A stretch of 62,999 bases of DNA, counting the filler, from Hyphochytrium catenoides (taxonomy: Eukaryota > Protista > Hyphochytriomycota), in assembly GCA_900088475.1 (NCBI GenBank). It is 13 parts of 13 records of this genome, joined end to end, with 100 filler letters (N's around TTAATTAATTAA, not from the genome) between each part and the next. Parts side by side here need not be neighbours in the genome. Positions count along the whole stretch, not along the records: positions 55,956 to 59,163 come from FLMG01003199.1; 12 more parts are not named here. The stretch is one strand, 5' to 3'. Positions 55,956 to 61,000 of the stretch are shown one piece after another; the stretch's first letter is position 1; every line of letters begins with the position of its first letter. The notes beneath the pieces are model-generated. The model did no database searches, had not been told where the DNA came from, and worked only from the letters and a program-made list of their open reading frames with translations. A program made the translations under genes and the position numbers.

Positions 55956-58039
55956 CAAGCTGCTCGGCCTGGTGACTCGTAGAGATATCGATTTCTTCGA
56001 GGACCGCTCTGTCAAACTTAGAGAGGTGATGACCCCAGTAGAGCAACTGATCGTTGGAAAATACCCTTGCACATTGGAAGAAGCCAACAAGATCCTGCAA
56101 GGTTGCAGGAAGGGTAAGTTCAGTAGAGGATAAAGAGGCTTCCAAGCTAGAGAGAAGAGAGACAGGGAGAGGAAGACAGGTACCGACATAGAGAGAAAGA
56201 GATAAGAGAACTACAGGGGTAAGAGATTGGCGGTTAGTACGATCGAGCCTGTGAGGAGAACAAGGACGCGACCCTGGGTCTATCTATAGTGCAAAGCAGT
56301 AGACCTAGAGACACCTAACCTCAAGATCCACGCGCCGTGCTTGCTCTCTCTCGGCTTCTTCTTTTCTCAACCTCTGCTATGGTTGCTTCTCTTAGGCAAG
56401 CTGCCACTAGTCAATGACAAGGGCGAGCTCGTCTCTCTAGTAACCAGAAAGGATCTGCTGAAGAACAGAGACTTCCCCAACGCTCTAAAGGACCCGAAGA
56501 CAAAGCGCCTGCTGGTTGGCGCTGCAGTCTCTCCTGAAGATCCTGAGAGCAAAGAGAGAGTCAAAGCTCTTGCTGAGGCAGGCGTTGATGTTATTGTCCT
56601 TGATGCTAGACATGGAGACTCTGGGGCTCAAATTGGCCTCATTAAGGTAATACTTGGACAGGCTTCATTCTCTTTCTCTCTTTTTTCTCATCACTCTCCT
56701 TTCTTTCTCTCTCTCTTTCTTTCGCTCTCCCTCTCTCTCTCTCGCTTCAATGAACATAAATATTCCATCTCTCCATCTCTTCTCTCTCTCTCTCTCTCCA
56801 GATGTACCACTTTAGCGACTTTCGGAGACCTTGATGGTTTCCTCGACTCTATCTCAGCATCTTGCTGCAGTTCTTGGCTTTTTATCCTTTGGATTGCTTC
56901 AATCACTCTACGTAATGGGTGTGGCTTTATCTTGACCCGATCTCTCGCTTCGCCGCTGTCTGCAGCACATCAAAGAGAATTATCCGCAACTGGAGGTGAT
57001 TGGCGGCAACGCTGTCACCCGCAGACAGATATTGAACCTCATCAATGCAGGAGTAGATGGATTGAGGATCGGCATGGGAGCGGCTTCGGTGTCTGCTGCT
57101 GCGGAGCTGAAGGCTGTAGGCCGCGCACAGTTGTCTGCCATCTATTACACCGCCAAACTAGCTAGAGAGCATGGTGTCCCTGTCATTGCGGACGGAGGAA
57201 TCGTGAACTCCGGTTGTCTGATCAAAGCACTTAGTTTGGGGGCGTCCTGCGTGATGCTAGGCCAGATGTTGGCAGGGTAAGCTTCTCCGGCATCAGAGGA
57301 TGGTCTATTGCCTCAGCTGTCGGGCCCGGGGTCTCTCTAAGTGGCGAGGGTCCCACTTGCTCGGGTCCTTCCATCCCTGGCTCTCCTAGTCCTTGTTAGG
57401 CTCTGTTCTGTCTATTACACGTCGGCGATCTGGTTCATTCATTTGTTTCTCGTCAACATGAGCTCCTGAGACCAGTAGTAGTCATCTTTCTACTGATTTA
57501 TCAGCTCTTGTCTGTCTCTGAAACTCACCTCCCGACAAGGATAGGCACTAACTTCCTCTGCTCTTCTAGCACGGACGAGTCTCCCGGCGATTACTTTTAC
57601 CAGGACGGGATGCGCCTAAAGCATTATCATGGTGTCAACAGCAATGCAGCACTGCGTAGAGCTGGAAGGAAAGGTAAAAAAAGGCCGGCTGTTTCTTTCT
57701 CTTAAGCGACTGTTTGGGAAGGACTAACTCAGGCGACACCTTTCCGTCCGTTCACCTCTTCTCTTTCTCTTATGGCGCACAGCCTCATACTCGGAGGAGA
57801 GGCGCTTTGTGGAGGGCGTAGCAGGGGCTGTGGTCGATAAGGGAACGGTACGGCGGTATATCCCGTACCTTGCACAGAGCATAAGGCATGGTTTCCAAGA
57901 CATGGGGCTCCGCTCTATCTCTGCCGTTCATGACGCGCTCTACAGTGGCTTCCTGAGGTTCGAGCTGAGGTCCGTGAACGCTCAGACAGAGGGAGGGGTC
58001 CACGATCTTTTCTCTTATACAAAGAGACTCTTCCAGTGA
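55956..58039 (+). CDS. IMP dehydrogenase homologue with CBS/Bateman domains but degenerate active site (probable pseudoenzyme), 5'-partial
   Basis: Exons 55957-56113, 56396-56646, 56966-57276, 57570-57673, 57783-58039. [82 protein letters not shown]. Catalytic loop reads [12 protein letters not shown] instead of [12 protein letters not shown]. Confidence 0.92.
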
Positions 58040-61000
58040 AGATCCGGAGAGAGAGAGTAAAGAACGCGATGAGAGCAAAAGAAAGACAGACTTGCTGTGT
58101 CGGAGGAACATTAATGGAGACCCAAGAGCTGTTCTTCGCCATGTATTTAACTGCTAATAATAATGAAGCGAGAGGCCTCAGACTCTTCAGCAAAGAGAGA
58201 GAGAGGAGCTCAAAGCCCTTGAAGAAGCAGCGGAAAGTCCTTGAAGGAGTGATAGAATAAGAATTGCAGAAGAGAGTGAAGAGAGAAGCAAGGGAGAGAG
58301 TACTATGATACAAAAACGAGGAGAGACGGAGAGAATTAGAGAGAGAGACACACATCAAAACGGATGATGTCCGCACTTTGACAGCAGAGCAAAACGGACA
58401 GCGTAGTCCGAGAGGCGGCGTCTCCATTCTCAGGTGGAAAGGATTTCCTAACTGAAGACGTTGGTGGAGCTATTGCGGGCGGCTCTTCCTCTCTCCTCGC
58501 TTCCTCTTATCTCCTGACTCAGACTTGATCGACTTTGAAGGTCAGGAAATCACAGAGAGAGAGAGAGACGGACAGAGAAATGACAGAAAGAGCATTAGAA
58601 AACCTTGTTAACAGGATGTGTGAGAGCGACGGACTGAAGAGGAGAACAGGCTGATTTCTTGTGGCAGCGGACAATCGAGAGCCGCGCTAGACGAGCGAGG
58701 CAAGACAGATGAAGAGTGTGACCGTGGGAAAGAGAGAGAGTGTGTGGAAGAAAGATTATGGTACGTGAGAGAGATAGCACAGGCACGAACCTTTTCCCTT
58801 GACAGCTTCTTTAGTTTTTCCAGTGCCTCATCTTCCTCTTTCTTCAACCCTAAGCAGCCCTCCCTAGGTCGCAATGGTCCGAACGAAGCGAGTTACCCAG
58901 AGGCGCCCAGGACGCGATGGGGCAAGACAGAGCAGGCGCGTGGTGAGAGGAGCGAGGTATAAAGGACAGACGAAAGGACACAGAAGTCCCAGACCTTCTC
59001 GTCTCTTCAAGCGCTTTATCTCTGAGTCGCGCTTTCCTTCTGTTGTTGAGTCGAATCCGGTCCAGGAGCTCCCTTTGCTGGGGAAACACAGAGGCAAGAA
59101 AGAGTTAGGAGACGTACAGCTTAGGCTATTATGGCCAACAAGTGTGCAGAAAGGGAGGAGACANNNNNNNNNNNNNNNNNNNNNNNNNNNNNNNNNNNNN
59201 NNNNNNNTTAATTAATTAANNNNNNNNNNNNNNNNNNNNNNNNNNNNNNNNNNNNNNNNNNNNATGGAGACGACGAGGCTGCCATCCTGACACCTCCTTC
59301 TCTCTCCCGCCGGCGTAGGGCAATAACTATTATGGAAATTGAGGACATTATTAGCTGAAGGTTGTTGTTATTAGCCGGAAGAAGAATGATTGCAGGCCGA
59401 CGACATTAAACGCTGATGTACTAGATTATTATAGGAAGGAGGCGAGGAGAGCAAACCTACTTGGCTTGTACTAGGGACGGCGGGGAGAAAGGGCAGTCTA
59501 CTGCCAATCTACGGGCTTCCCAACAAGGCAGCCTGTTTGTTCATAGGGTTAACAGAGGAGGGCAAGACATCCGGTGAGGATGAGAGACTGTGACGGCAGA
59601 TATCCCTTAGAGGTGGAGAAGAAGAGAGGCTACACTGAGAAGGACAAGAACAGACAGAAGAAAGAAGAAGACAGTCGTTTTATGAGTGATCTGTCCGATG
59701 ATTCTACGTGGAGGCAGACTCTAGCTAGATGTTGCGGCGCATCATCTTTGCCAAGAAGCCAGCTGTTGCTGCTTATCGATGGATGCCGCCGCTGCTCAAT
59801 CACAAGCAGCGCCTGATCATTATAAAGCGGAGAGGCAGTCCATCAGAAGATGTGGACTATGTATGCTCTACGAGCTCGCTATGCCCTCCCCCACCCATCT
59901 CAATCGCCGCAGAGCATAATAAGCGATCAATCCTCTAGAAGGTAAGTCAGTCTTTGAAAAGTGGCGAGAGGCTACCTGTCAACGGTGGCTGTCGTGAATG
60001 CAATGTTCTCCTCGTTGTTGGAGCCACGCCAAGGACTTTTACCGAGAGTGGTCTAGATAGTAGATATAGAGGAAAAGGTGTCGGCGAGCTGCACAGCGCT
60101 GGTCTTGACACAAGATGAGGTGAATCAAGTCAGAAGAAGAAGCGGTTGCGGCTGTAGCATATGCGGCAGGCAGTACGTTAAATTCAGGGCGGGGCCAGGT
60201 CCTATCTCTATGAAGCTGGTGGCCGCTATCTTTTCCTGGTATTTACCTATTTATTGCCCCTGCACTCTCAGTCAGCACTTTGATCAGCACCTGCTGCTGA
60301 CTATGACGACGTCCTCCACTGATTATTGTTGAACGACTGAGCTTTTCGACGACTGACTGCCAATCTGCCGATGGCACCCGAGGATGCGCACGTAGCTTCA
60401 GCAGCAGCTCGTGGGGGCTCCTCCTATAGCCTCCATAGAGATCATATGCGGCAGCGGGGCGCCACTGCTGATGCAGCAATAGGAGGCAAGCTGGAGCAGC
60501 AGCCAGAGCAGCAGCCTAGCAGGAGGAGGACGGACAATGACGATGAAGAAAGCCAGCCGCCGCAAGCCAAATCCTTGTGTTTGCGCCACTTGAAGTCTTG
60601 AAATCTTAGTCCCGAAAAGAAAGACACGCTCGGGCTATGAAAGTTCTTATACAACGATACGGGCTACGGTGTGAAATAAATGGAAGCAAATGAATCTTTC
60701 AAAAGTACGGTCTAAAGTGAGTAGCTTCTGGGGGCAGCTTGGGGGGACGAAGACTAATATAAGAGTTGATCCCTCGATCATCTGTCAGCTGAGCCTCTCT
60801 GGCTGCCCCAAGTAGCGCCATCCCAACTGCCAAGAAAGCGCGAAGCTTCAGAAAGAGCTTCTGTCTCGACGGCTCAGGCATCCCTTCATCTGGGTATGGA
60901 GACTGATCTTCGACGGGTCAGTCGGCAAGAACTGATGCGCCTGCTCGGGGTGTCGCTGCGTTAGCCCGCAACCAAGGGCTGCCCAGCAACAAAGTGAGGA

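Follow-up and report, generated by a model that had tools for sequence, protein, structure and literature searches.

We describe here a gene of the inosine-5′-monophosphate dehydrogenase (IMPDH) family in Hyphochytrium catenoides whose product has lost the catalytic machinery of the enzyme. The gene lies in a stretch of 62,999 nucleotides (the window; all positions are counted along it) joined from 13 parts of the H. catenoides assembly. It occupies the piece at 55956-59163 (GenBank FLMG01003199.1; GC content 0.505), with five exons on the + strand, and is truncated at the 5′ edge of that piece. It probably encodes an expressed and selected protein that is unable to perform either the IMPDH or the GMP reductase (GMPR) reaction, that belongs to a clade of IMPDH-like proteins without the catalytic cysteine, and that would act as a non-catalytic, nucleotide-binding oligomeric subunit. 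The initial annotation, made from the sequence of the window, had presented the gene as a single odd paralogue. This view has to be replaced: judged from its sequence, the gene is a derived member of an old and widespread Cys-less clade, which in relatives coexists with canonical IMPDH.

The chemistry of IMPDH and that of GMPR both pass through a covalent Cys-C2 adduct. In IMPDH this intermediate, E-XMP*, is reportedly hydrolysed with an Arg-Tyr dyad of the flap acting as the base. Replacement of the cysteine abolishes IMPDH activity, and Cys-to-Ser and Cys-to-Ala mutants are inactive. In the H. catenoides protein, translation and the phmmer alignment of exon C, which is gapless, place Ser at human Cys331 and Ala at each of Ile332, Thr333 and Gln334. 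The initial annotation had read the loop in just this way, with a TCT codon at the nucleophile and ITQ changed to AAA, and its two further motif changes, YRGMGS to YHGVNS and DSSQGNS to DARHGDS, are likewise present in exons D and B. The second change leaves Asp274 of the NAD site in place and turns the following Ser-Ser-Gln into Ala-Arg-His; the Gly-Thr-Arg/His and Phe282 columns of the NAD/adenine subsite are not conserved either. The first (KHYHGVNS in exon D) replaces the purine contacts Met414 and Gly415 with Val and Asn. In addition, MMGS has become MLGQ in exon C, so that Ser388 is Gln, and Gln441 is Glu in exon E. The flap is four residues shorter than in the human enzyme, since residue 31 of exon D corresponds to human 423 and residue 5 of exon E to human 436. 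Counting back from Gln441, the dyad position 429-430 is occupied by Arg-Lys, and Ser-Tyr stands three residues further on. The reported change of the dyad to SY is thus correct as to the loss of Arg-Tyr, which no alignment register restores, while the SY itself depends on the register chosen. Arg322, Asn303 and the finger hairpin are kept. Ser329, Asp364, Gly366, Gly387 and Tyr411 of the IMP ribose-phosphate cradle are retained as well, and so are the segments that had been listed as preserved: exon C carries IADGGI (Asp364-Gly-Gly), and exon E carries EGGVHDL, whose EGGVH is the C-terminal segment of the inter-subunit cation site. Of the features of an IMPDH, the protein lacks the catalytic Cys, the flap dyad and the NAD site; as a GMP reductase it fails for want of the Cys and because exon C scores far under the GMPR and GuaB1 cut-offs. 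The machinery for both reactions thus appears to be gone, in agreement with the non-catalytic status first proposed.

The gene model itself is straightforward. The coding frame is open over all five exons and all four introns have GT..AG borders, so the frames and splice sites are intact, as had been stated. In comparisons with Pfam PF00478 (gathering score 25.6), exons B, C and E score 46.6, 118.4 and 34.2 bits (E-values 3e-12, 4e-34 and 2e-8), and exon D scores 20.8. Exon C is about 55% identical to residues 289-391 of human IMPDH1 (phmmer against the PDB, E 7e-31). Across intron 1 the frame reads CRK-G-KLPLV, matching canonical IMPDH. What is encoded is the C-terminal two thirds of an IMPDH-family protein; of the Bateman domain only the final portion is included, in exon A and the beginning of exon B. 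The claim that the CBS domains are preserved could therefore be judged on the last CBS motif only: exon A matches the second-CBS-motif columns of the family and retains the Arg-x-Asp motif, but the whole pair is not in the piece and the Pfam CBS score, 18.8, is under the cut-off of 24.

Several observations show that the altered codons are real. The contigs over exon C come from two DNA runs of one study, X1 (2011) and X2 (2017), and from run X4, which belongs to a separate study, carries a different organism label and has no library type on record. The X1 and X2 contigs over exon C are identical to the window sequence, TCT included. The X4 contig over 57056-57239 differs from it by C>T or T>C changes only, and for that reason cannot carry a Cys codon. 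The initial annotation had argued against a base-call error, and the reads were checked for TGT: none of the contigs from the three runs reads Cys (TGT or TGC), and the distant relative described below also has Ser. Moreover, a 167-nt X4 contig joins 57673 to 57783, excising intron 4 exactly at its GT..AG borders. This joined form of exons D and E is not seen in the DNA runs, and the contig is likely a spliced transcript.

The gene also bears the mark of selection. Run X1 differs from the window sequence at six coding positions, all of them third positions, with five synonymous changes and one Met-to-Ile (260 synonymous and 808 non-synonymous sites compared). Exon A contains four X1 single-nucleotide polymorphisms, all third-position and synonymous. 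The introns show further X1 substitutions as well as indels, and more of them than the exons. The closest relative found, L001 (protein P0017), is a 517-nt AT-rich contig from a freshwater metagenome. It shares the derived residues of the H. catenoides protein, namely Ser331, Ala333-Ala334, Gln388 and the G-I-N-S that stands for GMGS, although the two genes are far apart in composition, with a GC content at third codon positions of 0.22 in L001 versus 0.58 in H. catenoides. Over 129 aligned codons, the differences at the three codon positions number 26, 6 and 88; the proportion of non-synonymous differences (pN) is 0.125, against a saturated synonymous value (pS) of 0.88. Because so distant a relative shares the derived residues and pN is far below the saturated pS, the degenerate active site is, on this comparison, old and under strong purifying selection. 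The gene is thus retained, as the initial annotation had supposed.

Two features of these sequences concern the introns and flank. L001 has its own AT-rich intron of about 53 nt (373-425 of the contig), three codons downstream of the position of intron 3 (57277-57569), after TDE and not before it; apparently the intron has slid or was gained independently. Runs X1 and X2 each show two alternative contigs of about equal depth, differing by many substitutions and small indels, over 57386-57471, 58444-58527 and 58587-58817. These roughly 50:50 contigs in intron 3 and the 3′ flank suggest a heterozygous diploid with two haplotypes, or else a pair of strains.

Exon C was searched with phmmer against 1.84 billion representative proteins, followed by word searches with full-length members and cluster look-ups. 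The top matches have Ala or Ser at the Cys position and have in common the motifs DA[RKQ][QHN]GD, xVKAVGR and GGVHDL. The named members of the clade come from oomycetes (Phytophthora infestans, P. cactorum, P. nicotianae, P. ramorum, P. idaei, P. rubi, P. capsici and P. megakarya; Pythium oligandrum; Globisporangium ultimum and G. splendens), from ochrophyte algae (Tribonema minus, Discosporangium mesarthrocarpum, Chromulina nebulosa, Ochromonas danica, Dinobryon and Florenciella parvula), from Platysulcus tardus, from the labyrinthulomycete Hondaea fermentalgiana and probably Thraustochytrium, and from one chytrid fungus, Batrachochytrium salamandrivorans. We built a maximum-likelihood tree of 101 rows by a quick IQ-TREE search, in which exons B, C and E of the H. 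catenoides gene were three separate rows; as fragment rows are included, placement inside the clade is loose. A Cys-less clade in relatives, which the initial annotation had proposed to seek by phylogeny, is present: 55 of the 56 non-Cys proteins form one clade, supported at 95 in the Shimodaira-Hasegawa-like approximate likelihood-ratio test (SH-aLRT). It branches among the eukaryotic canonical IMPDHs, its position relative to them not being resolved in the tree. All three H. catenoides exons fall inside it, exons B and E in a subclade of oomycetes and ochrophytes (support 91) and exon C on a long basal branch. Canonical and Cys-less copies are found together in at least seven Phytophthora species (P. 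infestans, P. cactorum, P. nicotianae, P. ramorum, P. idaei, P. rubi and P. capsici). The orthologue of P. infestans has the accession XP_002906713.1.

What the clade has lost and kept is clear from a column comparison of 28 canonical with 55 Cys-less rows. Of 149 columns that are near-invariant in canonical IMPDH, 113 reach at least 80% conservation among the Cys-less proteins and 28 fall under 50%. The losses cluster in four regions, namely the NAD subsite (with Gly-Thr-Arg, an Asp and Ser-Ser-Gln-x-x-Ser), the catalytic loop (Ile, Cys, Thr and Glu), the purine contacts (Met414 and Gly415) and the flap (Arg-Tyr and Gln441 among them). At the Cys331 position the clade has Ala in 28 rows, Ser in 24 and Gly in 2. 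A profile of the clade aligns to residues 15-514 of human IMPDH1, with a five-residue gap exactly over QKRYF. The retained columns include Arg322 and Asn303, the ribose-phosphate cradle (Ser329, Asp364-Gly-Gly, Gly387-Ser388 and Tyr411, present in most members), the finger hairpin T-x-E-x-P-G-x-Y-F-x-x-D-G-x-R-L-K, the EGGVH segment and, in each of the two CBS repeats, the Arg-x-Asp motif. In addition, the clade has near-invariant residues of its own: in human numbering Lys337 (49/55), Cys372 (44/55) and Asp505 (54/55), together with the Ser (52/55) and Arg of a Q-S-I-R-H-G motif. The H. catenoides protein has all the clade-specific residues (LKAVGR, NSGC and GGVHDL, plus DARHGDS and Ser331). 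For the clade member P0217, an AlphaFold2 model built on a 58-row alignment has a mean predicted local distance difference test score of 84.9, and confidence is low only for the catalytic loop, the C-terminal tail and the flap. In Foldseek it is closest to the full-length IMPDH structures of human and Ashbya (TM scores 0.78-0.85), and the fold predicted for P0217 is a (beta/alpha)8 barrel with an inserted Bateman domain.

Apart from one fragment, the sublineage of H. catenoides and L001 is, by its residues, the most eroded form of the clade seen. That fragment, P0417 (168 aa, from an ENA metagenome), is Cys-less and more degenerate than the H. catenoides protein: its loop has the sequence GEGSVATAHLSRPVGR, and it lacks the YRGxxS motif as well as most of the flap, with the C-terminal GGIHDLHSF intact.

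A few further observations were made on the tree and its members. The B. salamandrivorans copy (P0265) groups with labyrinthulomycete sequences (SH-aLRT 97; the unnamed P0198, P0191 and P0211 stand alongside), and so does not stand apart from all stramenopiles; this placement could stem from transfer of the gene among zoosporic lineages, or from an ancient origin with many losses. Other Cys-less IMPDH-like proteins lie outside the main clade (P0078, P0053, P0074, P0090, P0097 and P0081). P0078 groups with the canonical P0091, and another group has the loop GMGCSSL-x-S; from these sequences, the nucleophile seems to have been lost several times in IMPDH-like proteins. A partial IMPDH of Toxoplasma gondii (P0412) is canonical and only 61% identical. 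A coccidian origin of the gene, to which the GA/CT-rich introns had at first pointed, was rejected on this ground, because the two roughly 50:50 haplotype contigs speak for a diploid and against a haploid apicomplexan, and because the exons group with stramenopile sequences. In some gene models of Phytophthora nicotianae (P0310, P0307 and P0308), which come from one locus, a kinesin motor (PF00225) lying upstream is fused to the N-terminal portion of the Cys-less IMPDH, and P0317 of G. splendens runs on into a RING-finger protein. The kinesin-IMPDH fusion is probably a read-through of neighbouring genes. A link with flagella or the cytoskeleton, which the zoosporic lineages and the kinesin models had brought up, was dropped, as the fusion looks like read-through and the idea had no other support.

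Comparison with known families provides a frame for these results. The clade has its fold and domain order in common with canonical eukaryotic IMPDH (human IMPDH1/2, Ashbya gossypii), and also the finger, the K+ segment, Asp364-Gly-Gly, Tyr411 and the Bateman Arg/Asp motifs. It differs in having Ala or Ser at Cys331, in the deletion of Arg429-Tyr430, in the loss of Gln441, in the replacement of Ser275, Ser276, Gln277 and the adenine subsite, and in its variable Met414 and Gly415; the H. catenoides protein additionally replaces Thr333, Gln334 and Ser388. Against the NCBI equivalog model for IMPDH, TIGR01302 (cut-off 481.5), Cys-less clade members score 500.1 and 482.0 bits, versus 639 bits for a canonical Phytophthora copy; P0195 and P0265 exceed the cut-off by only 0.5-19 bits. 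It is because of scores just above this cut-off that databases name clade members IMPDH. Against GuaB3 (TIGR01304, cut-off 342.1) clade members and exon C reach 39-76 bits, and against GuaB1, with cut-offs of 549-675, about 50-200 bits. The protein is a member of neither bacterial family.

Mycobacterial GuaB3, the 'IMP dehydrogenase-related protein' of TIGR01304, is likewise a second IMPDH-family gene beside an active enzyme and one for which IMPDH activity has not been demonstrated; among the three M. tuberculosis genes, guaB2 is the sole one shown to encode an IMPDH (PMC10912719). However, GuaB3 is another family, whereas the Cys-less clade is eukaryotic, branches among eukaryotic IMPDHs and retains the Bateman domain. 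The GMP reductases of trypanosomatids and mycobacteria that carry CBS domains (PDB 6jig/6lk4; GuaB1) have the barrel and inserted Bateman domain in common with the clade and are matched by the clade profile, but they keep the catalytic Cys and the clade lies far under their cut-offs. By analogy, the closest functional counterparts would be dead-paralogue regulators. PRPS-associated proteins are one such regulator of a metabolic enzyme. The trypanosomatid AdoMetDC prozyme (PMC5201418) and the dead deoxyhypusine synthase paralogue (PMC3663545) are, like the Cys-less proteins, dead, under selection, found beside an active enzyme and equipped with intact oligomer interfaces. For both of them, formation of a hetero-oligomer and activation have been shown experimentally (PMC5201418, PMC3663545), whereas for the Cys-less clade they may be supposed from sequence conservation. 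Searches of the open-access literature turned up no account of a Cys-less IMPDH clade in eukaryotes, although an earlier description elsewhere is possible, and a search of the ESM Atlas returned generic IMPDH clusters only. The clade is apparently undescribed. A review of 2024 calls the catalytic cysteine of IMPDH 'completely conserved' (PMC10912719).

The pseudoenzyme status of the H. catenoides protein is well supported by its residues. Since the nucleophile has been replaced by Ala, Ser or Gly without a fixed choice, the Arg-Tyr dyad has been lost and the NAD subsite is unconstrained, such a protein should not be able to work as an IMP dehydrogenase. Because everything but the catalytic and cofactor contacts has been selectively retained, it appears to be kept for binding or assembly. 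The finger is the element by which IMPDH tetramers stack into octamers under nucleotide control. Since the Bateman motifs and the finger are conserved, a nucleotide-responsive, non-catalytic oligomeric subunit is the most likely function. Such a subunit would bind nucleotides; the Arg/Asp motifs kept in its Bateman domain are ribose-binding ones. It might sense purine nucleotides on its own, or it might join the catalytic IMPDH in mixed tetramers or octamers and tune the regulation of that enzyme. We put forward a more specific form tentatively, as one possibility: a dedicated regulatory subunit would form mixed octamers with the IMPDH of the same cell through the finger and tetramer interfaces, its Bateman domain would read adenine and guanine nucleotides, and its dead pocket would spare IMP.

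Some points weigh against reading the protein as a selected, non-catalytic subunit. The spliced X4 contig is likely but not proven to be a transcript, given the unrecorded library type. Coexistence with canonical IMPDH is known from relatives and not from H. catenoides itself. In the piece the Bateman domain is incomplete and the N-terminal half of the barrel is absent. Binding of a nucleotide in the active site is uncertain in the H. catenoides/L001 sublineage because the phosphate-binding Ser388 is Gln there. The proposed sensor or partner role is unproven, being inferred for every clade member from conservation only. Finally, the clade's own Lys337, Cys372, Asp505 and the Ser and Arg of QSIRHG could mean a new chemistry and not mere scaffolding.

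This last point leads to the main rival, a neo-functionalised enzyme that has kept the ribose-phosphate cradle and carries out a non-thiol chemistry, or acts on another substrate, by way of Lys337, Cys372 and Asp505. Besides the near-invariance of these residues and of the QSIRHG Ser (49, 44, 54 and 52 of 55), the tree branch lengths agree with it, as conservation within the clade is as tight as among canonical IMPDHs, and so does the retention of Ser329, Asp364, Gly366, Gly387, Ser388 and Tyr411 in most members. But the residue at the nucleophile position varies freely among Ala, Ser and Gly, and the positions contacting the purine and NAD are variable and have not been fixed anew. The H. catenoides/L001 sublineage, moreover, has also replaced Thr333, Gln334 and Ser388 and is still under selection, and because it is, the pocket does not seem to be the feature selected. 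We therefore regard a new enzyme as unlikely. It is highly improbable that the protein is still a working IMPDH with Ser as the nucleophile. Ser does serve as a nucleophile in other enzyme families, and clade members score just over the NCBI equivalog cut-off (500.1 and 482.0 versus 481.5); yet in half of the clade the residue is Ala, the Arg-Tyr dyad and the NAD subsite residues are gone, as are Thr333 and Gln334 in the H. catenoides gene, relatives keep a separate canonical copy with the Cys, and the corresponding Ser and Ala mutants of IMPDH are inactive.

The chance of a decaying pseudogene, or of a sequencing or assembly artefact, is slighter still. The joint loss of many catalytic residues and the fragmentary assembly might point that way, but such an origin is already contradicted by the five open exons with canonical splice sites, by the same sequence in independent runs together with the spliced contig, by the pN of 0.125 against a saturated pS in the comparison with a distant relative that has the same derived residues, and by the place of the gene in a conserved clade. 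We thus prefer a selected, non-catalytic subunit over each of these. The features of the gene are listed in Table 1.

Table 1. Features of the H. catenoides Cys-less IMPDH gene (window positions)
Feature	Position	Strand	Description
Exon A	55956..56113	+	Region of the last CBS motif, ending CRK; frame from 55957; 5′ truncated (translation)
Intron 1	56114..56395	+	282 nt, GTAAGT...TTAG
Exon B	56396..56646	+	End of Bateman domain and barrel strands; DARHGDS for DSSQG[DN]S
Intron 2	56647..56965	+	319 nt; (CT)n microsatellite at about 56690-56800
Exon C	56966..57276	+	Catalytic-loop exon; gapless to human IMPDH1 289-391
Ser codon TCT	57092..57094	+	Position of the catalytic Cys (human Cys331)
Intron 3	57277..57569	+	293 nt; two haplotype contigs, about 50:50, over 57386-57471
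Exon D	57570..57673	+	Finger, YHGVNS for YRGMGS, start of flap; residues 1-31 = human 393-423
Intron 4	57674..57782	+	109 nt, GT..AG; removed in a run X4 contig
Exon E	57783..58039	+	Shortened flap, Glu at Gln441, EGGVHDL C-terminal segment; human 436-514
Stop TGA	58037..58039	+	End of exon E
3′ flank	58040..59163	.	GA-rich, low complexity; presumably 3′ untranslated region and intergenic

The open reading frames of the 3′ flank (58040-59163) are without any Pfam match, and no coding sequence is recognisable there. In each of the three DNA runs, the summed contig depth at the (CT)n repeat of 56690-56800 and the (GA)n repeat of 58550-58570 exceeds the depth of the flanks hundreds-fold, with extreme depth in intron 2 at 56705-56811. 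By this measure, simple (CT)n/(GA)n repeats are very abundant in the genome. Many apparent 'joints' between contigs at these repeats are repeat artefacts.

IMPDH is a textbook drug target whose cysteine is called completely conserved (PMC10912719), and here a deep and well-conserved eukaryotic branch appears to have dispensed with the nucleophile, the water-activating dyad and the NAD site. Despite this catalytic loss, the branch keeps the regulatory domain and the assembly surfaces. The finding weighs more as a clade than as a single gene. Many of the oomycete, algal and labyrinthulomycete database entries under the name 'inosine-5′-monophosphate dehydrogenase' probably do not represent dehydrogenases. 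Because the Cys-less entries carry the IMPDH name, metabolic reconstructions and counts of IMPDH 'isoforms', including those of plant-pathogenic Phytophthora, may be wrong. The clade may also be seen as a natural experiment, in which the role of the Bateman domain and the octamer is separated from catalysis. If the dead copy does partner the live one, this would add a new layer to purine regulation. To our knowledge, a 'prozyme'-type hetero-oligomeric arrangement is not known for IMPDH. If these proteins are indeed regulatory subunits, stramenopiles would control the synthesis of GTP by a hetero-oligomeric IMPDH in just such an arrangement.

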